Shown here in pieces: positions 1 through 63,196 of a stretch of 64,000 nt of DNA. The notes beneath the pieces were generated by a model. That model was not told the origin of the DNA and made no database searches. It worked only from the letters and a program-made list of their open reading frames with translations. The DNA comes from Podarcis bocagei. Taxonomy: Eukaryota. The translations under genes and the position numbers were made by a program. Every line of letters starts with the position of its first letter. Within the stretch, counting starts at the first letter, position 1. The stretch lies in the NCBI GenBank assembly GCA_964188305.1, contig OZ076886.1; one strand, written 5' to 3'.

Positions 1-1979
1 CTGTTGATGTACATATTCTGCTTTGGCAATCATATCAGGGATGACTGGTCCCCGTGTCCCAGGTGTGTTTTCTTTTAAGAGGATCAAAGTCCGGAAGGGT
101 TGGGCAGAGCCACCGTGAGGGCTGGTGAAGGTAATTTGCAGATGTAGCAAACTACGTCGTCTCTTATCCAACCTCCCTCTAGTGACGGATGTAGTTGTGG
201 AATCCATCGTGGCATTGCCATGACGATAGAAAGGTTAATGGAAATCGTGAAGAGGCACAAAACATTGGACAGGAGTGTGTGTGTGGAGAGACAGTTGCGC
301 AAATATTTTTGTTCCTGAAGCATTTTGAGAAAGCCAGTCTCTTGATCAAGGGTTTCCTTCAGTGCTTCTTGGAAAATTTGCTTGGGGCAACTTCTGTTGC
401 CGGTCACCTAAGTAAGGCGAGAGTTGCCCCAAGCAAAATATTTGTGCAGCTTTTTCATGCTTGTTTGTTCCTATGACTGTTTTTTATCCTCCCTCTCTCG
501 GTGTGTGCTTGCTTTAAAATGGCATGAGCTCAGGAGTTGGAGAGAAGTGACTTTGTAATCCAGCCTTCACCAAGCTAGTGCCCTCCAGATGTTTTGAACA
601 ACAGCTCCCATCAGCACCAGCTGTAGTCTGGAACATCTGGAAGTGCCAAGTTGGAGAAGTCTGGTGTGAAAGAGATCTCTGAGGGCAGCTGGGCAGCGAT
701 GGGACTCTTGAGTTGTGGCTCCGCTTGGTGGAGGGTGAACCTCTGTTGCTCCCCTCTATCTCCTCTCATGGATGTGGTGAGCATTTTTTGCAGGGTCAGC
801 CAGCCACTCACTCTTTTCCCCCCAGTGGGACAGAAAACCAGATTTGCAGACTAGGAGGAAGGGAGCTCCTTGGCAGTTTCTACACCAGGTATTTTGCTCC
901 CTTCTAGGTAGCAGGTTTATGACGCTCACACAAGAGCACACTTGCTTTTGGAAACATTGAAGGTCCTAGTAGATCTGTATTAGCATTCATCTTGTGGCTC
1001 CACATATGCAAGCTACATGTTAACTCTCTGAGCTGGGAGGCGATGCTGGAGGGCAACACTGTTCCCATGAGAAAGCATGTTTTCCCCACTCCTTCCTCGA
1101 GACTACTTCAATTCTGTACATTTACCAGGGTCACGGTTGTGTCTGGGACCACCTGTTTCCCTGTATGTCTGAGCACTGCCCCTTGCTGGAAAGTGTGAGA
1201 AGTAAGATCTTCGTTCAGGAGCACACATGCCAAGAAGAGAGCAAGGAGCAAGTGAAAAGTTGTCTAAATAGTTGCAGGGGAGTAAGGTGAAGGGCACATC
1301 TCTGTGGGCCAGGGGGAAGCACACTGCATGTAGCAGATAGGCTCTCCAGGCGTGGCTCAGGCCTTTGCAACCCGATCTCGGTCCATGTGAGCTCTTCGCA
1401 TCCTGTTTTCACATGGCTATTTAAAGCTCCAAACACTCTCTTCTTGTTGACATGGCCCCTAAAAACCTAGTTCTGCAGAGGAGTGTATTTCTCTTACTTA
1501 CGACGCTGGCAGGTTAAGTCCTGCTCTGTTTTTCACATCCACAGACTCCAGGGATGAGGCTTGCTGTTATGTAGCTCACTCCCAGGTTGGCCTGAAGTTG
1601 CGGATGAGTAGAGGGAAGCAGGAAGTGATCTCAGAGTCCTCTCCCACCCTATCACCTCTTGGCTATTTTAAAAAATTATCTGGTCTCCCATCATTGATCT
1701 GTGGTAACCATGGATGCCAATCCCTAACTAGACACCAGATTAGGTGAATGGAGGATTTTGTGTTGCTGGGATGAATGTCAGGGACCATTTGCCTGTTGGC
1801 ACTTATTTCAAAGGATCTCTGAAACTGCTGCCCTCGTGCAATTCCATGATGACTTCTTGAAACCGATCCAAATGCCTGTAGCTGGGTCCTCAATTACAGG
1901 GACCTTACAGTCAGCATCACTTTTTCATTTTTAATCCAACTTCTGAAACTGAATAACACATACCTTTCTACCTCCTCAG

Positions 1980-4900
1980 CAAAGCAAGAAGGCCGGACCT
2001 GCGAATACAACGGCCGCATCTACCAGAACGGGGAGAATTTCCAGCCCAGCTGCAAACACCAGTGCACTTGCATCGACGGGGCTGTGGGTTGCCAGCCGCT
2101 CTGCCCACTAGAGCTGCCCCTGGCCTCCCTGGGCTGCCCCAGCCCCAAACTCCTGAAGGTGCCTGGCCAGTGCTGCAAGAAGTTTGTGTGCAGCAAAGGA
2201 CTCAAGAAGTATGGAGGGGTCACCTTTGAGTACAACGCCAATGGCGACTCCAGTGACAATGAGCTCATCTATGTGGGCAAAGGCGGACACTGGAAAAACC
2301 TACCAGGTGAGGGCTGAAGGGTGCAGTCAGAGCTGCTGCGACTGGAGGAGTAGGAATGCTATTCAGCTTCTGCCTATATTTATACCAAGAGGCTTGTGGC
2401 ACCTTAAAGACCTAACACATCTGTTGTGGCATAAGTTTTCATGGACTACAGCAGGGATGGGGAGGCTCAGGCCCCAGGGCTGAATAAGTCCCGCCCCCAC
2501 TCCCTTGGGACTTCCCCTAGGCCACACCCTCTCACCGAGCACACCCCCTATCCCCAGGCAACACCACTGCTTCGCTAGCCTGGCTTTGCACGCTTCCTGA
2601 GTCTTCTTGACAGGCTGGTGTGTGTCTCTGAAAATGCCTCAAGCTTGCATGCGTGGACCGAGAGGAGCGTGTGAGCGAGTCTAGAAACTAGTGTACTGTC
2701 TGAGTTAAAATTTGCACTGATTGCTTGGCTCCCTTTGCCTCTTGCCCCACCCACCCCTTGAACACTTGAAGGTTGTCCAGATGGGAATGTGGCCTGCAAA
2801 TGGATGACGAGATTAGTCCACCTGGAAGTTTCTTTTGCAACAACAAACATGGGTGCTCCTTTGGAAATCCTTAGAATGGAAGGCATCCCTTTATACTGGA
2901 TGTTTTCCATCGTATTAGGTCACTCTAATGTTTGCATAGGAATAGAGAGTCTGCATGGGGATAGTCTTGGGCACTATATTTGTGGTTGTTGCTAAATTTG
3001 GTGTGCATCACAATTTAAACAATTGCTTTGGGGACCTGAATATAGGTAGTTATGAGGTGATTTATGGCTGTAGGGATTCTCCACCTCCCCAGCTTAGAAC
3101 GATAGGCACCTTTGGACCAAAAAAACCAAAACTGCTTTATGAGCTGTGCAGCAGTGTGTTGCATCTGCCCCATGGGAAATGGCATAGCAAAGTAAGATGA
3201 AGCTTCCAGCCATTGCTCGTGAGACTGCATCTGTCAGAGGCATTCCCTTGTAGGATAATGTACTGTAGGATGTCATACCAGGATGTTTATTAGCAGGCCA
3301 CATTGCAAGGCTTAAAAGTCATCTGCTTACTGTGTGGCATTGCTCTTTGATGACAAGCTGCTCCTTAAACCGCTTTGGGACACCATCTCACCCATGAAAC
3401 CTCCTTGCACTATCAATTTCTAGGTCCGTGTCTCACACAAGCTAGTGGCGATGTAGCTCCCTTCTCTTTTTGGCAGCAATCTAGTGACTTTGCTACTAAC
3501 TCTCTAATTGGAACCCTGAAATTTCCTCCTGCCTCCAAGTATCTTGGTGTCTTCACTTCCTACTACTTGGGCCTCATGCGGTCTGTGCACCAAGGCACTG
3601 AGGGAAAGGTTGCGCCTTGAGAAGAAGTGCCTAAGATGCAGCTGGCCAAGTTTATAACCGTTTTGCTCCAAGGGCGGGAAATGGAAAGCTGGCACTGTGT
3701 TGCGTGGAAGCGGCATCTAAACAGGGTGGAGACACAGAACATAAATAGGGGTAAGAGTGGGAGTTGGCCTTTGCCCTTTCAGGATCTATATCTGATGCTC
3801 CCGAGGGGCAGGAAATGTGATCCTTCACTTGCATTTGCTTTGGTTCCCAGTTGCTATTTCGACTAAGCATGGCAGTGGTTGCATAAGAGAGGGACCGAAA
3901 AGCATTAAATCTGTCTGAGAGGGATTGTTCACACAATCTCCTGTATCACTCTTGCTCCCAAGTGATGGTTGGTCGGGATGCCACTACTCCTGCATATTTT
4001 GTTTTGTGGTTTCATGGCAAAAGAGGAATGCAGGCATTTCCTTCCCAGAAGACAAGAGTTTGCACCTACTGGGAATTTATTCTACAGATGCCAGTTTAGT
4101 CTAAATGGAGTTGATGGGTTCTCAGTTGCCAGAGTCCCGAACAGCCTCCACATCCACACCCTCTTCCCTCCATTTCCCCCCTACAAACTCATTTCCCATG
4201 TTTCCTACCCAGCATGTGGCCTTGCCTCTTTCTGTAGTTGCCATTTTGAATGGTGTGGCTGCCATGGAGGCTTACGAAGAATCCTGCTGAGTCATCTTGA
4301 CTTAGCATGATGGCAGCTAGATGCCTCTGGGAAGCTCATCTACAGGACAAGGAGACAGTTGCCTTCTTCTGTTGCCCATTAATGCCTGCCTTCCGTTTGT
4401 GGAAGTTGCAGGGAACCTGTGGCTCCCCAGGTGCTGCTGGACTCTAACTCCCATCATTCCCAGCCAGCATGGCCAGTAGCTGGGAATGATTGGAACTGTA
4501 GTCTAGTAACATCCAGAGAACAGAACAGACGTGTTCCACATCTCTTAAGGAACTTAATCCCTTTCAATCTCATGTTATGCTTGGCCAATGTGTGTAGCTG
4601 CTGGCAGTACATTGCTCACTGTTCCCTTTGGGTTCAGAATGACAGTGCGGTAACTGGGATTCCCTTCTCTTCCCCAGCATGGAGGCCATTCTTCCAAAGC
4701 CACGTGGCAAAGCAACAGCACAAGTGCTTGGCTCAGACTACGGACTGGTCGCCGTGCTCCAAGAGCTGCGGCTTCGGCATCTCCACCCGCGTCACCAGCG
4801 ACAACCCGAAGTGCAAACTGATCAAAGAGACCCGGCTCTGTCAGATCAGGCCTTGCGGGAAACCTGATTTTTCCAAACTAAAGGTGAGGGTTGGGAAGGC

Positions 4901-5670
4901 GGGAAGAGGGTGAGCAGGGAATAGGGGAGGGCACTGCTTACCACAGAAGCCCAGCATCTGGGACACGAGAGCTGAGTCTGCCTGCACTCCCAACCATTCA
5001 AAATGGCAAGTTTTGAGCCTAACAGGTGGGATTAGGGCCCAAGATGGTGAGATGTTCTGCTCCAGGCTTACATTACAGGAATGGTGCCTGTGGGGCTAAG
5101 AGGTGTGTGTGCTTGTTTACTAGAAAGAAGAATAGCTCAGCTGGATACAGCGTGGTGCTGATAATGCCAGGGTTGCAGGTTTGATCCCCCATATGTGACA
5201 GCTGCATATTCCTGCAACTGTCCCATATTCCCTTCCAACTCTACAATTCTATTATTCTATTCCATGACTAGGTTCTCCAGCTGTATGCTTTGTGTGCATA
5301 CAGCTTTCCTGGGCTGTATTCTTTTGCACACAGTGCAAATACTTTCCTCTCCTCTTTTCAGAAGGGCAAGAAGTGCTTGCGGACACACAAAGTGCGTGAG
5401 CCGGTGAGGTTCAGCTACGCTGGCTGCAAGAGCCCACGCCGTTACCAGCCCAGCTACTGCGGGTCCTGCTTGGATGGCCGCTGCTGTGTCCCTCTGCGCA
5501 CTCGCACCCTGAGCGTGCCCTTCCATTGCCCGGATGGGAGCTCCTTCTCCAAGAACGTCATGATGATCCACACTTGCCAGTGCGGCCCGGCTCATTGCCC
5601 GCTCCTCAGCGAACCTGCCATGGGGCCCCGGTACCAGCTCAATGGGGATATTCACAAATTCCTGGAGTGA
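1980..5670 (+). CDS. CCN1/CYR61-like matricellular protein, 3' part (VWC, TSP1 and CT exons); 5' exons lie upstream of the window
   Basis: Exons 1980-2306 ([43 protein letters not shown]...[10 protein letters not shown]; VWC plus linker), 4678-4883 ([45 protein letters not shown]; TSP1) and 5362-5670 (KGKKC...[11 protein letters not shown]...FSKNVMMI...DIHKFLE*; CT). All junctions are AG/GT, phases 1-1-0 match, and the 10+6+10 cysteines are present. The NELIxVGKG linker and DIHKF terminus are CCN1-type. Confidence 0.93.
5127..5267 (+). mobile_element. tRNA-derived SINE with CR1-type 3' tail in the last intron of the CCN1-like gene
   Basis: A-box-like TAGCTCAGCTGG, B-box-like GGTTTGATCCC, tail CCCTTCCAACTCTACAATTCTATTATTCTAT. 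Confidence 0.7.
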
Positions 5671-8354
5671 TGGAGCCCGCTATCCTCGGGAACCGAGTCA
5701 ACACATCTCCAGTGACTCTGGATCACCCCTATGGACTTGAGGCCCCTCTGCCTGATGTCAGGAGAAAACAGGACATCCTAAACCTGCCCTGCTTCCATGA
5801 ATGCAAATGCGACTAAAATTAGGAAAGGCAACATGGATTTTGGAGGTGCACTAGTTCCTCAGTATATGGGTTGTGCCTGGGAGTCTAGAGATCTAGCGAT
5901 TTGAGGAATGGATCTCATGTCGCTGGGTTCAATCTCTCCATTCAGCCCGGCCAGGCTCAGGCTGGAACTGGGCCTTGGGCAACAAAATGGGGAGTCAAAC
6001 AAAGAGATCTCCCCATTGCAGTCACCTTTAGGGCTCCACAGTCCATGATTTGGTCACAGTGCTGGAATGAAGGAGGAAGCACAGCCCTTGCACGCTAGGG
6101 ATAGCTGTAAATTCTCTGGTTTGATTTGCCAAATTCCAAGATGGACAGCTCTGATATCCTTAAGGTCCTTTGACTGGAAAGAGCAGAGGAGGATGCAAGG
6201 CAGATAACCCACAGCTGGACTGGATTGGGGTGAGGGGGAGTCAGATCTGCCCTGGATGCCTCCCTAAGATCCTACAGTCCTTTTTAGATTGAAATCTGGC
6301 AATGCAACCTCAAGACAGTCCCACAAATAATGAATTAGGATGAGTTTTGGTACAGAGTTCAAATTAATGGCCAGTAGAGGAAGCCATGGTGGAGTGGCAG
6401 TGCTCACTTGACCTCCAGGCAACTGAGTTGCTACTATGGGTGGAGGGGGCAAGGCAGTGAGAAGGTCACCATGGTGCAAATGCAGAGGCAGACCGGCACT
6501 CCTGGTGTGTTTGCACTGCGCTGACCTCCTCGCTGCCTGGCCCCTCCCCTTCCAGGTAAGCAGAAGCAACTTAGCTACCCAGAGGTCAGGTGATTGCTGC
6601 CACTCTGCCATGCTGTCTGCTGCTGCTGCTGCTTTTTTAACCCTGTGAATTATTGAGAAAATGGCCAAACAAGGGTTGACAGGGACCTGCTTCCCCTTCA
6701 CCGCCTGCTGTTTGCACCTGTGCTTCTAATTCCTTCCTTGTCTGCCTCAGTTGGAAACCTTTGCTTCCCATTCTGTCCTCCTTTGAACCGAAGGGCTGCC
6801 TTGCCTCCTGCTCACAGCACACCCTGGTGGTGAGATGGTTTCCTGGAGAGAAAGAAACCTGTTGGCAACAACAATGCGGAAAGGGAAGGGCTTCTTTCTC
6901 CAGTTTGCGCTGTTTCCCAGCTCATCCTTCTGCGTGTTGCTGAACTGTTATTCAAACTTGGGTTGGGGGGGAATATTTTTTAAAAAATTAAAATGTGGGG
7001 AAAATCAGAGTAAACACACACACTGCAGACTGAAAACAAAAAAGAGGGAGGGCTGAGAGTTGAAGGAGATTTTCTGTGTTATTTCAAAAACCAGCAGACC
7101 CTATTTATCCATATGTGATGGTAGCAGAAGGGAAACACTTTATCAAATCACTTTCTTCCTTTGAAAATCACTTTCTTCCTTTGAAAATCAGCATCTGCCT
7201 CCAGACTAAGACATGTTGATTTCCGGAACAGTCATTTGTAAAAGGCAATCCCCCATTTGGCGAGACTCTCCTCTCCAGCAATTCTGTTGCACCATGGCTA
7301 AGCTTAAAGAGACCTCCTCCGAGATTTATTGAAGCACTTTTTAATAATTAATCATGTTCCCTATATGTTCCTGGTGAGCAGCAACAGGGATCGTCAGAGA
7401 ATAGGGGGGCAATGTTGGAACAGATATTAAACTGTTAAGTCTTTCTTGTCCTGTTGAGGAAAACTATATTTATGAGCGCAGCAAAGTAGGCTTTGCTACA
7501 AATAAGGAGATTTTATTTTATTTACCTTTTTTTTGCATAAATATTATAGCTTCAACGCTGGTTTGGAGTGTCGGCTATTTAGCTTCATAATGAAGCCTTC
7601 CTTGCTTTGCATCTTGTAAGCAGAGCTTTTGATTCCACTCTCCCTCTTGGATCTTAAAAGTTGCTAGAATGAAATGTCTGTCACTTCATTCTGGTGTTTG
7701 TGCCTCTTTCCGTCGTCTTGGAGGTTTTGGTGTAGGAAAATCATGACACTGCCCTTGCAAAAGGGCTTGATATAAAATGTTCAAGGGGTATGTGATAGGT
7801 AACCTTGGTTGCTTTCCATTTCTACAGCCATCGCCCCTGAACTCCATTCTTCCCAATGTAGGAGGAAATTGGATTTGCAAATCCAGCAGGACCTGACCTT
7901 AGTTGGAACTGAGGGGTTCTTGTTATTTTCAAAATGTATTCTTGGGCTCTCAATTATGATTTTAAGGCTACAATCCTAATCACATTCTCTTGAGAGTTTG
8001 CCTCACTGAACTGATTGGGTCTTACTTCTAAGTAAACATGCACAAGCCTTGTTCATGAGATACTAGTGACCATATTTATCACATCCTCATTATTAGCAGC
8101 TGACATATATTTATTGTTTAAGTTGTGCCAAATGTCGTAATGGTTTCTTTTTACAGGTGAACCAATTTAGTAGATATGGGGAATGCAGTAGGTTTTATAT
8201 AGTTCGCCTTCAGTGTTATTTTAAACAGTCTCAGCCCACTGCCATTCTACCATTTTTACCAGACACTTCAATGGAGCAACAGAAGACTATGCATATACAT
8301 ATTACATTTGACTAAGACTGAATGGTGGGAGGCAGGGTTTCAAATACTATAGGG

Positions 8355-12152: not shown

Positions 12153-12762
12153 AAAAAACAACCACCAGAAAGACTTGTGGCACCTTGAAGAGTCTCCAAT
12201 TTATTGCAGCATAAGACTTGGTGGACTAGAGCCCAGTTCATCAAACATATATTGCATGGCTATAGAGAAAACAATTGTGAACAACTGGGCCAAAAGGTCA
12301 TGAAAGACAAGAGATCATGAGACAGAAATTCCTGATCTGAATACATAGGATTAAATTTACTGTACTCATAAATTCTAATCCAGCAATTTCACACTGGAGT
12401 CCTCGTAAAAGTTTTTGCTGCTGTTAAATGCTGGTGACTTTCAGGTTGGCAGCAGTGTGTCCTGAGAAAATGAAATAGTATCTTCCCACTAGCTTATGCT
12501 GCCTTAAAAAAAACATGTAAGCATTGTGCCCATTTACTCTTAACTGTGGATCCTTGCTTATTTGTCCTATGCAGACACTAGGAAGGCATTGTTGGCAGCT
12601 GATACCGTACCATACTTCAAAAAGTAAAAACCAGGACACCTCAAAAGTTGTTGAGGAAACCCCCAAAATTGTTGGGCTTTTTTTAAAGGAACAGTTTGGG
12701 CTGGTTCCTTTGACAAAATGCTGTGTCCAGTTGCTTTTTCTTCTGGGTCTGTCCTGTAGTAG

Positions 12763-14124
12763 CAGGCAGCTGGATCGAGGCGGGTCAGGGCTGCTGATTC
12801 TTTTAGATCTGTCAGCAGCCTTTGACATGGTCGATCACGAACTCCTGGACCACCGCCTTGCCGACGTGGGGATCCAGGGCACAGTCCTTCAATGGCTGCG
12901 CTCGTTTCTCTCTGGTCGGGGACAGAGGGTGGCGCTTGGGGGGGAATTGTCATCACGCCACTCCTTGGTGTGTGGAGTGCCTCAGGGTGCAATTCTCTCC
13001 CCGATGCTTTTTAACATCTTTATGCGCCCCCTCGCCCAGCTTGTCCGGAGTTTTGGGCTGGGTTGCCATCAGTATGCTGATGACACCCAACTCTATCTGT
13101 TGATGGATGGCCATCCTGACTCGGCCCCAGACACACTGACCAGATGTCTGGAAGCTGTGGCTGGATGGTTACGTGGGAGCCGGTTGAAGTTAAATCCTTC
13201 GAAGACAGAGGTCCTCTGGCTGGGGCGGGACGATATGGGATCGAGGGGGCAACTCCCATCTCTTGCGGGGGTGCAATTAGTGCCAGCACCGGCCGTTAAG
13301 AGTTTGGGTGTAATCTTCGATACCTCCCTCTCTATGGAGTCGCAGATTACAGCTATAACAAAGGCGGCATTTTTTCATCTCCGCCAAGCTAAGCAGTTGG
13401 CCCCTTATCTCTCTCGTCCTGACCTAGCCACTGTGATCCATGCGACGGTCACCTCCAGACTGGATTATTGTAACTCACTCTACGTGGGGCTGCCCTTGAG
13501 ACTGACCCAGAAACTCCAGCGGGTGCAGAATGCCGCGGCGAGACTCCTTATGGGGTCTTCGCTGCGAGAGCACATTCATCCGGTATTATACCAGCTGCAC
13601 TGGCTCCCGGTGGAGTACAGGATCAGGTTTAAGGTGCTGGTTTTAACCTTTAAAGCCCTATACGGCCTAGGACCCTCGTACCTACGGGACCGCCTCTCCT
13701 GGTATGCCCCACAGAGAAACCTACGGTCTGCAAATAATAACATCCTCAAGGTCCCAGGCCTCAGAGAGGTTAGGCTGGCCTCAACTAGAGCCAGGGCCTT
13801 CTCGGCTGCAGCTCCAAACTGGTGGAATGCTCTGTCAAAAGAGACTAGGGCCCTGCGGGACCTGACATCTTTCCGCAGGGCCTGCAAGACAGAGTTGTTC
13901 CACCAGGCCTTTGGTCAGGGCGCAGCCTGACTCCCTCCTCTGGCAACCTGCACATAATTCTGCTTAATTGGTTGCCATCAATTTGATTTAATTAATTTTT
14001 ATAATGAAATATTTTTAGATTGTGTGATTATTTGACTGATTATTTGATTGTTGTTAGCCGCCCTGAGCCCGGCTTCGGCTGGGGAGGGCGGGATATAAAT
14101 AAAATTTATTATTATTATTATTAT
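12763..14124 (+). mobile_element. 5'-truncated L2-clade (CR1/L2 group) LINE with a stop-free RT C-terminal region
   Basis: LLDLSAAFDMVDH, GVPQGAILSP, YADDTQLY, SRLDYCNS and LHWLPV motifs; stop at 13930; AT-rich 3' UTR, terminal stem-loop and (ATT)n tail; flanking TAGTAG at 12757-12762 and 14125-14130. Confidence 0.93.
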
Positions 14125-19205: not shown

Positions 19206-21538
19206 TAAAACAAAAGGACCTCTTAAGATAATAACAGGGTGGGAGGGCAAAAGTTTCCTATCAGAACTGTTTGGCAATAGCTGATATTGACTGGGAAGGT
19301 TATTTACACGGAGAGGTGTTGTGTCAAGTGTGACTTAAGGGGTTGGTCCCATAAAGTTCATTCTTGTTGCATTGAACAAATGTGCTTTTTTGCAAATATG
19401 GTGCTGTTTGTGCATCTTTCTCTCCCACATCAAACAATGGGTTAAAAGTTAACCATTCTTTTCAGCATAGGAGTGGCTAAATGTCCTGGATGTTCAGTTA
19501 GGGCTTTAAAACAACCAGCTGAATAAGCAAATATGGGTGAAGACTCTACTCATAGCCCCCTCATTGCCTTGTGCTCTAAGAGCAGAATGGAAATGACCCT
19601 GGGAACTGCCTTCAGGATCTAATAGCTGTCAGCAGTCACTGAAGCTTTCTGCATATGGCTTCTCTAGAGTGGGCAGAAGGTAATGTGATCTGGTGGAACA
19701 TTGGGTGCCCTAGGATATAGGTGGAAGAGCCTCTCTAAGTCAGTGGGTGACTTGAGACCTATCTACCTAAGTCAGCTCTGTCAGTTCATGGGCAGCGGGC
19801 AAAGTATTCTATGACACTTATTGCCTGGGAAGACTGTGCAGAGGCTGCCAAGGGCCAGTTAGTCTTTCACTTCCTGCACAGTAAAATAGATCATTGGTAG
19901 TGTCAACGTTGGACCACGTGGCTTGGCAGCCCTCCCCTTGTCTTCTGCCCTCTCCCCTGGAGAGGAGTGCTATCATGTATTGTGGCCTCTGCAGCCACAG
20001 TTCATCACACTTCTGCTCAGGTACAAAATTACCACTGGCAACAAGGCTTGGTTGGTCCCAAACCTGCTGTGCAAACTGCATCAGGTGCACCCAAGGTTCT
20101 CATAAGGGGAGCTCTCCCGACCTGGTACCCTCCAGTTGCTTTCGGCTTCAGCCAGTGTTCTATGCTGGCAGGGGCTGATTTGATGGCAGGGGCTGCTCTC
20201 GTCAAATCAACCCAAGATTCAGTGCATGGCAGTTGCATAAGGCCTTCAGCTCTTTTGTATGCTACATGCCAATCCTGGATAATCAATGTGGATAAACCTT
20301 GCATTTTAAATAGGCTCCAAGCAAGTGTGTGTAAGTACGAGGCATTTTCTGGAACAAATTTGCATCTTCTGTTTTGCTGTTCACCTTGTCTCAGAGGCAC
20401 TTCAACTTTCCCTGTAAAGTTTTGAGTCTCTCCTCAGTTTAGAGGCAGGAATTGAACTGTCTTCAACAAATCCCTTAAAAAAAAACCAACCCACCCTCCA
20501 AAGCTAAGACATGTTTAAAATAACTTCCTCTCTTTGGTCATACTGAAAAGGGCTTTGATAGGAGATCTAATTATCTAATAGTATGGCTCTGAGCTGCCTT
20601 GGTTTTGCGGCATAGGATTTATTGTTGAATATAAATTTCAGCTACAGTAGTGGTTGTAAATTTTGTAGCGATCTTTTAAATGCCTTGACGGTCCATTGGA
20701 TGCCATCTGGGAAGAGTCCTCCTTTCAAGTTATACTCTGTCTTGGCCTGTCCCTGCCAGCTGCTCTTCCACTGATAAGTCACATGGGAAGGCATAGGGAG
20801 CAGAGCATGGTGAGGAATATCAGGTTCTCCTTCTGCTGGTGGATTTGGTTTTCTTTCTCACCACATCCCCCAAGCTTGAGTGCTCTGTGGTTTTGATGGA
20901 ACACATTTCTTTTCTTTTCTTTTTTTGCTGGGAGTGACGGAACCCTTGTTGCAAAGTAGACAGCTAAAATAGTTGCCAGCCATGGGCAAATGCTGCTCTC
21001 TGGGCGGCAATGTTCCTGATTTGTCACTTTGCACAGTGGCAGAAATAGGGCTAATCTAATGAACAACACAACATTGGCCTTGTGACTCTAAGGTGGATCC
21101 TAGCAACGCAACTGTTGCTTGACTGATCTGACTTACCAGTAAGACTCCAACATAAGGCAGCTGCCACTATGACTTTGGCATCCCTAGAAAATTAGTTTTG
21201 TACTGCGTGGATGTTCATGCTTTTCTTTGCAGTCCCCCAATGTAGAATCCACCTCTCTGAAAGCTTTTGGCAACAAGCTGCAGATAGCTTCATGTGACTA
21301 GATGGCCGCATATGAATGCTTTTGTGTATATAGTCAGTGCTGGCTTTTTGCATCCGAAGCAGCTGTGAGAGTCATCTGCAATACTACACACAATCCCCGC
21401 AGAGCTTCATTGGGGTGGGGTTCCACACAAAGTGTTGGTGGTCCTCTTTTTCAGGTCGCAGGTGAAAACGGAGCCCTGCACCTGGCCTAGCGGTTCAGAG
21501 AGGTACGGACAGCCTGCCCAGTGTCAGTCGGTGCGAAG

Positions 21539-30742
<9,204 letters not shown>

Positions 30743-42700: not shown

Positions 42701-45700
42701 GGCCTAGGGCTCCTAGGCATAATTCTCAATAGTGAGTTGCACAACGACCCCAGGGGTCTATTTACACTGGAAAAACCTGTGCAATAATCTTATCACCATC
42801 TCCAATGGTTCCTCCATTAGGATCTTTTGCCATATCCCTCTAGGGCCTGGGTCTCCCAAGGAAAGTCAAGCTCAGCCAACTACTCCCCCCCGCCCTCTCG
42901 CCCACCCTATACCCTATACCTGCTCTGTCTGGCTGCTGATAGGCGCTGCCATCTTTCTTGCTGCCCCCCAGATGGTGACAGGCACTTTCTCCAGGCCAAG
43001 AGGCCTTTGTATGACATTGCTCATTTCCTTCATGGTGGGGACGCTCTGATCCTTTGTTCAAGGGCTGCTCCTCGAGGGAGTGCAGGTCTCTGGTGAGGGC
43101 ACTGCTGGGTGGGATCTCTTTCCCACCATGCTTGCTGTCCTTACAGTCCCCGTTCACCTGGCCCATCCCAGGTCTGCTGTAGTTGCTGGCCTCATAATCT
43201 TGTGCCACCTCTGAACCTTCAGACATGGTGGAGGCTTCATCCTCTTCTTCTTCTTCCTCCTCTTCTTCTTCTTCACCTTTGACCTCCTCACCTGCCTTCT
43301 GCAAACATAAAAAGAATACATATATATTTACAAATCCAGGCCCTGCTTCCACAGCACCCCAGACTAATCACCCCTGTGTCTAACTCTCCAGGCTTACTCC
43401 ATGTTGGTGCCTCAAGTTCCTTGTTTCACTTTTATTGACTTTACAGTACTGTCCTACACATAATTGTTGTTAATGGTGCTTACTGCCAGGCTAAGGGTGT
43501 ATGGGATTGTGGCCTTTTGCTATGCCAACTTTCCTGGGAGTTAAGTACCACTGACCTCTGTGGCTGTTACTTCTGTCTAGACATATAAACAGGATTGCAC
43601 ACTTTGACAACTAAGCCAATCTACTTCCAGGTTACAATGTAATTTTACTCGGAGCCATTTCTTGTAATCCTGCTTCAGTTTCCCCTATTTGTTCAAAATG
43701 AGTTACTGTACAGTGGTACCTCTGGTTACACACTTAATTTGTTCCGGAGGCCCGTTCTTAACCTGAAACTGTTCTTAACCTGAAGCACCACTTTAGCTAA
43801 TGGGATTCCCGCTGCTGCCGCGCCGCCAGAGCACGATTTTTGTTCTCATCCTGAAGCAAAGTTCTTAACCCTAGGTACTATTTCTGGGTTAGCACAGTCT
43901 GTAACCTGAAGCATATGTAACCTAAGGTACCACTGTACTTGGAACCAGTGGTGTTGCTAGTCTGGGTAAAGGCCTCCACAATACTACCGCAAAATGCTCA
44001 GAGGCTCTTTGAAACACAGCAGGAGCCTTCTAATCCAAGAAGAGATGGAATCAAACTTCAGCCACACCATCCCTCCACTTGGCTTTGTTGTGCAGATCCG
44101 CCTAGATTTATGGAAATCTATTGCCATCCTTGTAACAGAAAACTTGCCAAAAATAAGAGAGAACTGAAAGGGGCTTCTTTTTACTGGACTGTAATTGTAT
44201 TCTACCCTTGATAATTGCTCTGATCCTTACTGGATTGGGTTACATTCCAGAGCTGGTCACCCTCCTGACATGAGGGTGACATGATTTCTCCTTTTCTGCT
44301 CCCCCCTCCGCTCCCCGTTTGCATTCGCTGCCTTACTACTCCCACCACCTCCCGACCTTACTGGAGGTTACAGAACCCTTTAGGTCAAGCACAAACTGAC
44401 TCTTTGTTCTGTGTTTATACGGAGCCTGGCACGGCCTGAGTTTGGCGGGGGGGTGGGGGTGGCGAGGTCGGAGAAGGGGCCACTGTCCATGGCCCGACGT
44501 GCATCCTCAACGCCGCACAAATGTCACCGGAGGGCCACGCACGCAGGTGAGCGGAGCCTCTCCACACGCCCGGGGTTGGTTCTTACCCGCTCCCCAACTC
44601 GGCCCCGCAAGTTCCCCGCGGACCAGGCGGAGTTGTGCCATCCAGCGGCGGCCTTTCCGCTCACCTTCCCACAATACTTCGGAACTGCACGGGAGAATGT
44701 CGCCCCGTCGAAGCCCAGGCACCAATCGTGGCGCCCCCTCCCGTGCCAAAGCGATTTGATTGGGCGCTGCCCATAACTCTTCCTCCCAGACACACGCACA
44801 CCTGCGCGAGCGCCCGCTGACAACATTCGGGGGGCTGGGCGCCGTCTGCCCTCCCCGAAAGCGGCTCCTCTCCGGCGCCCGCCCCTCCGCTCCCCCCCCC
44901 GCGCGCCCAGTGTTCGGGCACCCCCTGCGCGCGCACTCCTCCGCTAGGTCCGTTTCCGTCCTGGGGAAGCTCACCTGTTCCCCTCAGCCCGTGCGCCCCC
45001 GCCGCCCCGCCCCCACCCCCTCCCCCCGCGCGCGCCGCGGCAGCCCCTCACCTTGTTCCTGTAAGCCCTGGCGCTGGGCGCCCGGGCCTGCGCGCCTCTC
45101 TCCGCCCTGGGCAAGGCGACGCTGTTGCCGCTGCCGCCCCCGCCCCCGCCGCCACCCAAGCGGGTCCTCTCCAGCCGCTCCTCTTGGAGCAGCCCCTGCG
45201 CTCGGCCTCGAGTCACTCGGCCGCCCCCCGGCGCGGCGCCGTCGCCGCCCAAGTAGCGCACAATCTCTCGCAGGCTGACGGGGGAGGGCTCCTCCGGGGC
45301 GGGGGCAGGCGGCGGCGGTCGCTCCCGGCCGGTCCGACGAGGAGGCGGCGGCTGCGGCGGTGGCGGCGGAGGAGGTGGCGGCGGCGGCGCGGCTGGCTCC
45401 GCGCGGGGCGCTGCACGCTGGGAGGACCGGGGCGTCGCGGTGGCGGCGGCGGCGGGAGCGCTGGGCGGGGAAGTGCGGGCCGGCCGCTGCGGGGCCGCGG
45501 GGCTGGCGGCGGGCGTTCCGCCTCGCCGAGGCGGCTGGACCCGCGCAGCGTTGCGGTACGAGATGCTTCCCTTGTAGCTGACGCGGAGCACGGCGCGCTG
45601 CTGGATGAGCTTCTCCAGCTCGGCGCGGGTGCGCTCCGGCTCCGGGCCGTGCCGCCGGCGCACCATGCGGCAGATGCGCTCCAGGTCCGGGCGCGCCTTG

Positions 45701-45789
45701 CGCGAGCGCAGCGAGTCGATGGTGTCCAAGATCCACTCCTGGTAGCGCGGCGCCTCCTGGCCCGGGGGCGGCGGCGGGGGCCCGGCCAT
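39435..45789 (-). CDS. SAMD1: Sterile alpha motif domain-containing protein 1 (atherin): N-terminal CpG-binding winged helix, C-terminal SAM, 491 aa
   Basis: Exons 45789-45052, 43298-42920, 42446-42356, 41003-40895 and 39593-39435; phases 0,1,2,0; 1476 nt. Winged helix [35 protein letters not shown]...[10 protein letters not shown]; [25 protein letters not shown]...[30 protein letters not shown]; Kozak accATGg. Confidence 0.96.
39677..39713. repeat. (AC)n microsatellite
   Basis: Read directly from the sequence. Confidence 0.95.
39981..40070. mobile_element. 90-bp hAT-type MITE in SAMD1 intron 4
   Basis: 13-bp TIR CATAGCTGTCAAC and perfect 8-bp TSD AACACAAG. Confidence 0.88.
43711..43935. 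mobile_element. Tigger/pogo-like MITE in SAMD1 intron 1
   Basis: TA|CAGTGGTACCT ... AGGTACCACTG|TA with repeated internal TAACCTGAA motifs. Confidence 0.88.
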
Positions 45790-46170
45790 GGTGTTGCCGC
45801 CTCCCCCGGGGCTTCGCTGCCCCCGTGCGCCGCTCCGCCTTGGCCTCAGCTCTTGCCCGCGCGGCGCCAACTAGACCCTCCGCCCGGCAGGCGCTGCTGC
45901 TGCTGGAAGCGGCGGCGCGCGGGCTGGTCCGGGCAGCGCGAGCTCCTCCCTCCCCTTCCCCCAGCCGCACGCGCCGCCGCCTCCACCACCGCCCGAGCGG
46001 GACCCGCAGCCGCTTAAGGAGGCGCTGTTGCCTCCCGTAGCCTCCCTACACTTGGCGGCTTAAGGTGGAGCAGGAGAATTCGCAGCGTCCCCTTAGCGGC
46101 CGCGCCGGCTGGAAAGGGCGCTCTCTGGCCGCCTCAGGCAGAAGTCAACAGCAGGAATCCGGCGAGTACA
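44420..46170 (-). promoter_or_regulatory. CpG island covering the SAMD1 promoter, exon 1 and start of intron 1
   Basis: Very high GC and CpG density around the ATG at 45789. Boundaries are approximate. Confidence 0.85.
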
Positions 46171-52359: not shown

Positions 52360-52492
52360 NNNNNNNNNNNNNNNNNNNNNNNNNNNNNNNNNNNNNNNNN
52401 NNNNNNNNNNNNNNNNNNNNNNNNNNNNNNNNNNNNNNNNNNNNNNNNNNNNNNNNNNNNNNNNNNNNNNNNNNNNNNNNNNNNNNNNNNNN
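52360..52492. other. Assembly gap (133 N) inside the PRKACA 3' UTR
   Basis: Run of N. Confidence 0.99.

Positions 52493-53427: not shown

Positions 53428-63196
<9,769 letters not shown>

Follow-up and report, generated by a model that had tools for sequence, protein, structure and literature searches.

Does the CCN-type gene at positions 1980-5670 of a 64,000-nucleotide stretch of Podarcis bocagei DNA (contig OZ076886.1 of assembly GCA_964188305.1; the whole stretch is called the window below) correspond to the lizard CCN1, or to a further member of the family that mammals do not have? A sequence-only reading had proposed the second answer, namely an intact extra CCN gene and probable CCN1 paralogue. 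The analysis reported here leads to the conclusion that these positions very probably hold exons 3 to 5 of a functional gene, encoding a secreted, cysteine-rich matricellular CCN protein, which is not CCN1 but belongs to a sister lineage of CCN1, designated clade B.

The three exons (Table 1) are each preceded by a polypyrimidine tract and an AG, and GTGAGG donors close exons 3 and 4. The frame of exon 3 opens at position 1982, with phase 1 introns on both sides, and splicing of exons 3 to 5 yields 279 residues, uninterrupted by any stop or frameshift, including 26 cysteines (10 + 6 + 10). The CCN family has a total of 38 cysteines, of which 26 belong to the last three modules, VWC, TSP1 and the C-terminal cystine knot (CT). 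Pfam matches to VWC in exon 3 (1e-11), TSP1_CCN in exon 4 (1.6e-21) and Cys_knot in exon 5 (6.9e-11) follow the CCN module order. All 26 cysteines align with cysteines of primate CCN1, and they are invariant in the 54 other CCN1-type rows of the alignment (26 from clade B, 25 from clade A, which is CCN1 itself, and 3 from clade C, see below). Each exon holds one module, the boundaries falling between modules, and the exons of Tiliqua, Phrynocephalus and Emys align with those of the window end to end. Protein identity was 88% to the corresponding Tiliqua exon for exon 3, 90% to both Tiliqua and Phrynocephalus for exon 4, and 88-90% to other lizards for exon 5. Sequence searches of the PDB returned the VWC domain of rat NOV for exon 3 (5nb8, 4.6e-22) and, as the only other match, the CTCK domain of VWF. 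Splice sites, reading frame, Pfam domains and cysteine alignment thus bear out the claim of three clean exons with all 26 VWC, TSP1 and CT cysteines. The introns announced at 2.4 kb and over 1.9 kb were also found: the first is intron 3, and the second is intron 2, whose beginning lies to the left of the window and whose length therefore exceeds 1979 bp. Downstream of the gene, a scan of the 3′ flank gave no AATAAA and no enrichment in ATTTA; only the variant ATTAAA was seen, at 6987 and 7426.

Relatives were collected by an exhaustive profile search with the exon 3 peptide and by a word search started from the best full-length match, and were ranked by identity. Closest were two Ensembl-derived UniProt models of Podarcis muralis, named ‘CCN family member 1’ (98%). 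Proteins of other squamates (Phrynocephalus, Anolis, Tiliqua, Varanus, Notechis and Gekko) came next, labelled ‘CCN family member 1-like’ or ‘CYR61-like’ and 77-84% identical. Identity then fell to 69-71% in turtles, 65% in a caecilian and a newt, 63% in coelacanth and 57-61% in sharks, bichir and paddlefish, after which came the teleosts. The canonical CCN1 of any vertebrate ranked below the clade B proteins, at 53-56%.

Two trees were built, a quick one with 89 rows and a careful one with IQ-TREE (67 rows, 372 columns, model LG+C20+F+G4), rooted on CCN2 and CCN3. CCN1-type proteins fell into three clades (support given as ultrafast bootstrap / Shimodaira-Hasegawa-like approximate likelihood ratio test, SH-aLRT): CCN1, or clade A (99/92), clade B with the window gene (100/99), and ccn1l1, or clade C (98/93). 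Support for clade B in the quick tree was 100. Within clade B, the window gene falls among the squamates (100/100), beside P. muralis (100/99). The ccn1l1 clade was placed outside CCN1 plus clade B, and the window gene is not among the named ccn1l1 proteins, those of Ictalurus, Carcharodon and Latimeria. When the amniote clade B proteins were forced together with amniote CCN1, the log-likelihood dropped by 186.6 and this topology was rejected by the approximately unbiased (AU) test (p = 1.2e-42). Moreover, canonical CCN1 was recovered in Paroedura, Heteronotia, Gekko kuhli, Gekko japonicus and Anolis sagrei, and both CCN1 and the clade B gene are present in Gekko kuhli and in the turtle Chelonia mydas. 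On the strength of the clade B support and of the rejected nesting, the gene is a CCN1 paralogue distinct from CCN1, as had been proposed.

Clade B includes squamates, turtles, a caecilian, a newt, coelacanth, sharks, bichir, paddlefish, gar and teleosts, and each of clades A, B and C holds cartilaginous fishes as well as bony vertebrates. Judging from this distribution on the tree, clade B arose before the split between sharks and bony vertebrates. The expression ‘seventh CCN’ used in the sequence-only reading is right about the existence of an extra lineage but undercounts the ancestral set, ccn1l1 being a second extra CCN1-type lineage. The latter was kept in the frog Ranitomeya and in the salamanders Ambystoma and Pleurodeles, and no amniote ccn1l1 was seen among the amniotes sampled. 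It thus seems that ccn1l1 was lost in amniotes and that clade B was retained in sauropsids.

Selection on the gene was estimated by the Nei-Gojobori method from codon alignments of exons 3 to 5 against genomic loci (synonymous divergence, dS, 0.81-1.06). The ratio of non-synonymous to synonymous substitution rates (dN/dS) was 0.071 with Tiliqua, 0.073 with Phrynocephalus and 0.146 with Emys. A ratio of about 0.07 with respect to other lizards means that strong purifying selection has acted on a coding gene. The word ‘intact’ can therefore be retained for exons 3 to 5, which have no stop and a dN/dS of 0.07, and its scope is limited to these exons. A processed pseudogene or a recent duplicate was also considered, and rejected in view of introns placed as in other lizards and a turtle, of the presence of sharks in the clade, and of the same dN/dS value. 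Among tetrapods, clade B evolved 2.5 to 4.5 times faster than CCN1 (gecko-turtle distance of 0.64 versus 0.14 substitutions per site), whereas coelacanth-shark distances are equal for the two lineages. This combination suggests that constraint was relaxed or shifted on the tetrapod stem.

We next turn to the origin of the gene, on which its neighbours bear. Canonical CCN1 adjoins DDAH1 and ZNHIT6. On the downstream side of the window gene, the side covered here, the neighbours are not these two but PRR36, SAMD1 and a gene for a protein kinase A (PKA) catalytic subunit (Table 1). PRR36 comprises a 982-codon exon (25239-28187) and a last exon (30236-30742) with a Pfam BTBD8_C match (2.8e-20); this domain links PRR36 and BTBD8 as paralogues. 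In Lacerta agilis, the 10-kb flank of the PRR36 locus stops short of the CCN gene. The PKA catalytic-subunit gene was taken as PRKACA, the choice of alpha rather than beta being made by analogy, from its adjacency to SAMD1 as in mammals. The earlier identification of SAMD1 and PRKACA as neighbours is in agreement with these results, through the Pfam domains of both and, for PRKACA, through synteny. We take human PRR36, TGFBR3L, SAMD1 and PRKACA to lie on 19p13, and their paralogues BTBD8, TGFBR3, SAMD13 and PRKACB to lie on 1p with CCN1. A whole-genome duplication is favoured because the PRR36/SAMD1/PRKACA block is paralogous to the BTBD8/SAMD13/PRKACB/CCN1 region. Together with the age of all three clades, which predate the gnathostomes, these paralogous neighbours fit an ohnologue from the vertebrate (2R) whole-genome duplications, the mammalian copy having been lost. 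The 2R duplication is thus the most plausible origin, one that fits the data without being proven by them.

Table 1. Positions of the clade B gene and of other features in the window.
Feature	Position	Strand	Remarks
Stretch within intron 2, probably not a true coding exon	1554..1692	+	Matches first exon of P. muralis model A0A670K8M8 (P0001; Ensembl-derived)
Exon 3	1980..2306	+	VWC module, 10 cysteines, plus first part of basic hinge; AG at 1978-79, GT at 2307
Intron 3	2307..4677	+	2371 bp; GTGAGG donor, CCCCAG acceptor; about 3.65 kb in Tiliqua
Exon 4	4678..4883	+	Remainder of hinge and CCN-type TSP1 module, 6 cysteines; ends in phase 0
Intron 4	4884..5361	+	478 bp; GTGAGG donor, TTTCAG acceptor; about 0.4 kb in Tiliqua
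Exon 5, coding part	5362..5670	+	C-terminal cystine-knot module, 10 cysteines; tail ...NGDIHKFLE; TGA stop at 5668-5670
PRR36 (proline-rich protein 36), downstream	21521..30742	+	96% identity to PRR36/LOC114590805 of Podarcis raffonei and P. muralis
SAMD1, first coding exon	44971..45870	-	Pfam SAMD1_WH 1.3e-27, SAMD1_SHD 3.5e-18
PKA catalytic-subunit open reading frame with exon	58709..59083	-	Pfam Pkinase 1.5e-07, just below the curated cut-off for a short piece

The interval between the CCN gene and PRR36 contains a LINE-type retroelement, seen as a 468-codon open reading frame on the plus strand (12524-13930) with an RVT_1 match (4.3e-27). Between 17700 and 19200, a ladder of near-identical open reading frames of about 139 codons, spaced by about 148 nucleotides, is present on both strands and points to a tandem repeat, rich in CpG, with a unit of about 148 bp. 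Further to the right, 133 N at 52360-52492 mark an assembly gap or a masked stretch. In another clade B species, the mackerel Scomber scombrus, the gene (L004:19413-23306, minus strand) lies 4 kb from a gene for a DDX39-type helicase of 427 residues. The helicase scores 2.3e-52 with DDX39B and 2.2e-51 with DDX39A, so that no decision was made between A and B and this neighbour was not used as synteny evidence.

Several results weigh against the conclusion that the window holds part of a functional clade B gene, sister to CCN1, and they are examined here with the other explanations of the locus. The gene could be the canonical lizard CCN1 orthologue, merely fast-evolving and relocated: its VWC module is 75-77% identical to that of CCN1, the CCN1-type motifs CEYNxxIYQNGExFQ and ...DIHKF are present, and the P. 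muralis models go under ‘CCN family member 1’ in UniProt. Yet the separate clade with its shark and fish members, the AU test (p = 1.2e-42), the existence in lizards of a highly conserved CCN1, found in Gekko kuhli alongside the clade B gene, and the neighbours PRR36, SAMD1 and PRKACA make this so improbable that it can be discarded. The tree leaves a weaker point, as the placement of clade B as sister to CCN1 received only moderate support (94/76). In addition, no clade B protein of a mammal, bird, crocodilian or frog was found in predicted-protein databases, genomes not being searched. A more serious competitor is a decaying or truncated lacertid copy, which would have kept intact 3′ exons but lost the 5′ exons, the promoter or the signal peptide, and from which no secreted protein would be made. 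Exons 1 and 2, for the signal peptide and the IGFBP module, are to the left of the window, and intactness is seen for exons 3 to 5 only. Positions 1-1979 were searched for an IGFBP exon among cysteine-rich frames and none was found. In Tiliqua, introns 1 to 4 measure about 0.9, 3.2, 3.65 and 0.4 kb, and because intron 2 is 3.2 kb long, no exon 2 is expected within 1.98 kb. Neither of the P. muralis models (P0001 and P0267) has a convincing signal peptide, and P0001 begins in a non-conserved intronic exon. The matching stretch in the window (Table 1) has a GT donor after ...SLIC-G and joins exon 3 in phase, but one base is apparently missing with respect to the P. muralis model, which breaks the frame from the upstream ATG; it is probably non-coding or an annotation artefact rather than a true coding exon. 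Finally, a protein database search returned no RefSeq protein of a lacertid for the CCN1-like gene. RefSeq PRR36 proteins were returned for Podarcis muralis, P. raffonei, Zootoca and Lacerta agilis, and the missing CCN1-like protein may be due to an annotation gap or to a pseudogene call. Loss of function is nevertheless difficult to reconcile with a dN/dS of 0.07 over exons 3 to 5 in comparisons with two other lizard families, with the absence of any stop or frameshift, and with the 98% identity between the window and P. muralis proteins. Furthermore, in P. muralis isoform P0267 the IGFBP exon is complete and its junction with exon 3 is exactly that of other species, and the genes of Tiliqua, Phrynocephalus and Emys are complete, with five exons and the domains IGFBP, VWC, TSP1_CCN and Cys_knot. 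A truncated lacertid copy is therefore very unlikely.

The remaining explanation concerns the mode of duplication, an ancient CCN1 paralogue being accepted but ascribed to a local or segmental event rather than to the vertebrate whole-genome duplications. The coelacanth proteins of clades A and B are listed with an identical scaffold length (172,207,807). The two genes may thus be linked, which is also compatible with a segmental duplication, and the number of CCN1-type lineages is three, not four. On the other hand, the presence of cartilaginous and bony vertebrates in all three clades places the duplications within the 2R interval, and the two genes are on contigs of different sizes in Gekko kuhli, Chelonia mydas and Hemiscyllium. 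PRR36, SAMD1 and PRKACA also have paralogues near human CCN1 (BTBD8, SAMD13 and PRKACB, on general knowledge). We consider a segmental origin unlikely, although less so than the truncated copy. The conclusion retained is that of a functional clade B gene, its exons 3 to 5 being in the window.

What might such a protein do? By analogy with CCN1, a clade B protein would be secreted and bound to the matrix, and would signal via integrins and heparan-sulfate proteoglycans through its VWC, TSP1 and CT modules. The VWC stretch corresponding to the alphavbeta3 site of CCN1 is identical at 18 of 20 positions, including the Asp of CIDGAVGC. In the CT module, conservation is partial for the basic cluster at its beginning (KGKKC.R.HK.R) and for the two arginines of ...CKSPRRY. 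The assignment of this VWC stretch as the alphavbeta3 site, and of the CT basic clusters as binding sites, follows the CCN1 literature; the integrin- and heparin-binding sites of CCN1 were reportedly mapped by the Lau laboratory. The hinge is where the two proteins would be expected to behave differently. This is the region where CCN proteins are sensitive to proteases (PMC3133677), and because it is basic instead of acidic in clade B, the protein may be expected to differ from CCN1 in its processing by proteases, its retention in the matrix or its binding to heparin.

A broader scenario can be drawn from these elements. Early jawed vertebrates would have had at least three CCN1-type genes. 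One of them, clade B, with its basic hinge and partly rewired heparin- and integrin-binding surface, would then have disappeared, by separate losses, from mammals, archosaurs and frogs. In squamates and turtles it would have remained under strong constraint and would serve a matricellular function, perhaps related to wound repair or to regeneration of the tail, which mammals either cover with CCN1 alone or lack. We propose it tentatively and, taken as a whole, regard it as rather doubtful. A role of the clade B gene in tail regeneration is pure speculation.

The gene itself is already annotated in databases for dozens of species, often as ‘CCN family member 1’ or ‘CCN family member 1-like’; in some teleosts the name is that of a zebrafish clone, si:ch211-106h11.3, given by projection. 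Three zebrafish Cyr61 paralogues were described by Fernando et al. (2010) and ascribed to teleost tetraploidisation (PMC3133677), and a 2019 paper on CCN evolution mentions neither reptiles nor an extra lineage. Our literature search found no paper defining clade B or studying its function. What is new here is the recognition of clade B as a distinct, unstudied member of a known family. CCN biology has been built around six mammalian genes, and one ‘extra’ Cyr61 lineage turns out to be as old as jawed vertebrates and constrained in reptiles. It needs a name and an orthology assignment of its own, as the database label ‘CCN family member 1’ invites confusion with true CCN1. The comparison of clade B with CCN1 offers a natural means to study hinge charge and CT basic patches in CCN1-type signalling, and the gene is a cheap candidate to look for in transcriptomes of lizard wound healing and tail regeneration.

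Compared to its relatives in clade B, the window gene appears ordinary. Its exon structure is that of Tiliqua, Phrynocephalus and Emys, with no material difference. A basic hinge of about 50-55 residues is common to the clade, as is the ...HKFLE/D tail, teleosts excepted. Within the clade, the CCE(R/K)F of coelacanth and sharks is replaced by CCKKF in the sauropsid members, which also have one additional residue in the last CT loop.

A gene that resembles it by its description was reported in axolotl by Crowner et al. (2019): a novel, anciently diverged ccn1-like gene of the met1 region, with a shortened hinge and a function described as unknown, in a genome that also has a separate true ccn1 (PMC6473073). 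The human counterparts of the neighbours of the axolotl gene are on chromosomes 3 and 17 (PMC6473073), which differs from the SAMD1/PRKACA environment of the window gene. The only ‘CCN1-like’ protein of Ambystoma that we recovered falls in the ccn1l1 clade.

Zebrafish ccn1l1 (cyr61l1), a matricellular Yap target (PMC13745464), provides another point of comparison. Like the window gene, it is a CCN1-type paralogue without a mammalian counterpart, and it has the same four-module family architecture. It belongs, however, to a separate clade, whose hinge is strongly acidic (net charge -8 to -13) and which, among tetrapods, was seen in amphibians only. Median net charges of the hinge were +4.5 for clade B (53 residues), -5 for CCN1 and -11 for the three rows named ccn1l1.

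The last comparison is with CCN1 itself. Both genes share the visible module order VWC, hinge, TSP1 and CT, with one module per exon, and the window gene has kept the CIDGAVGC stretch, the C-terminal ...DIHKF motif and CEYNxxIYQNGExFQ. Identity between the two decreases along the protein, from 75-77% in VWC to 68-70% in TSP1 and 57% in CT. The introns of CCN1 are shorter and its neighbours different. The hinge of amniote CCN1 has 59-66 residues and a net charge of -4 to -9, against 54 residues and +4 (4 acidic and 8 basic) in the window gene. The ‘much shorter, non-acidic linker’ of the sequence-only reading is thus confirmed as to charge, but the shortening amounts to 5-12 residues only. Both motifs pointed out in that reading, KKFVC and CQCGPAHCP, are present in the window gene: the first replaces EEWVC of CCN1, and the second replaces CKCN-YNCP, with one extra residue in the last CT loop.

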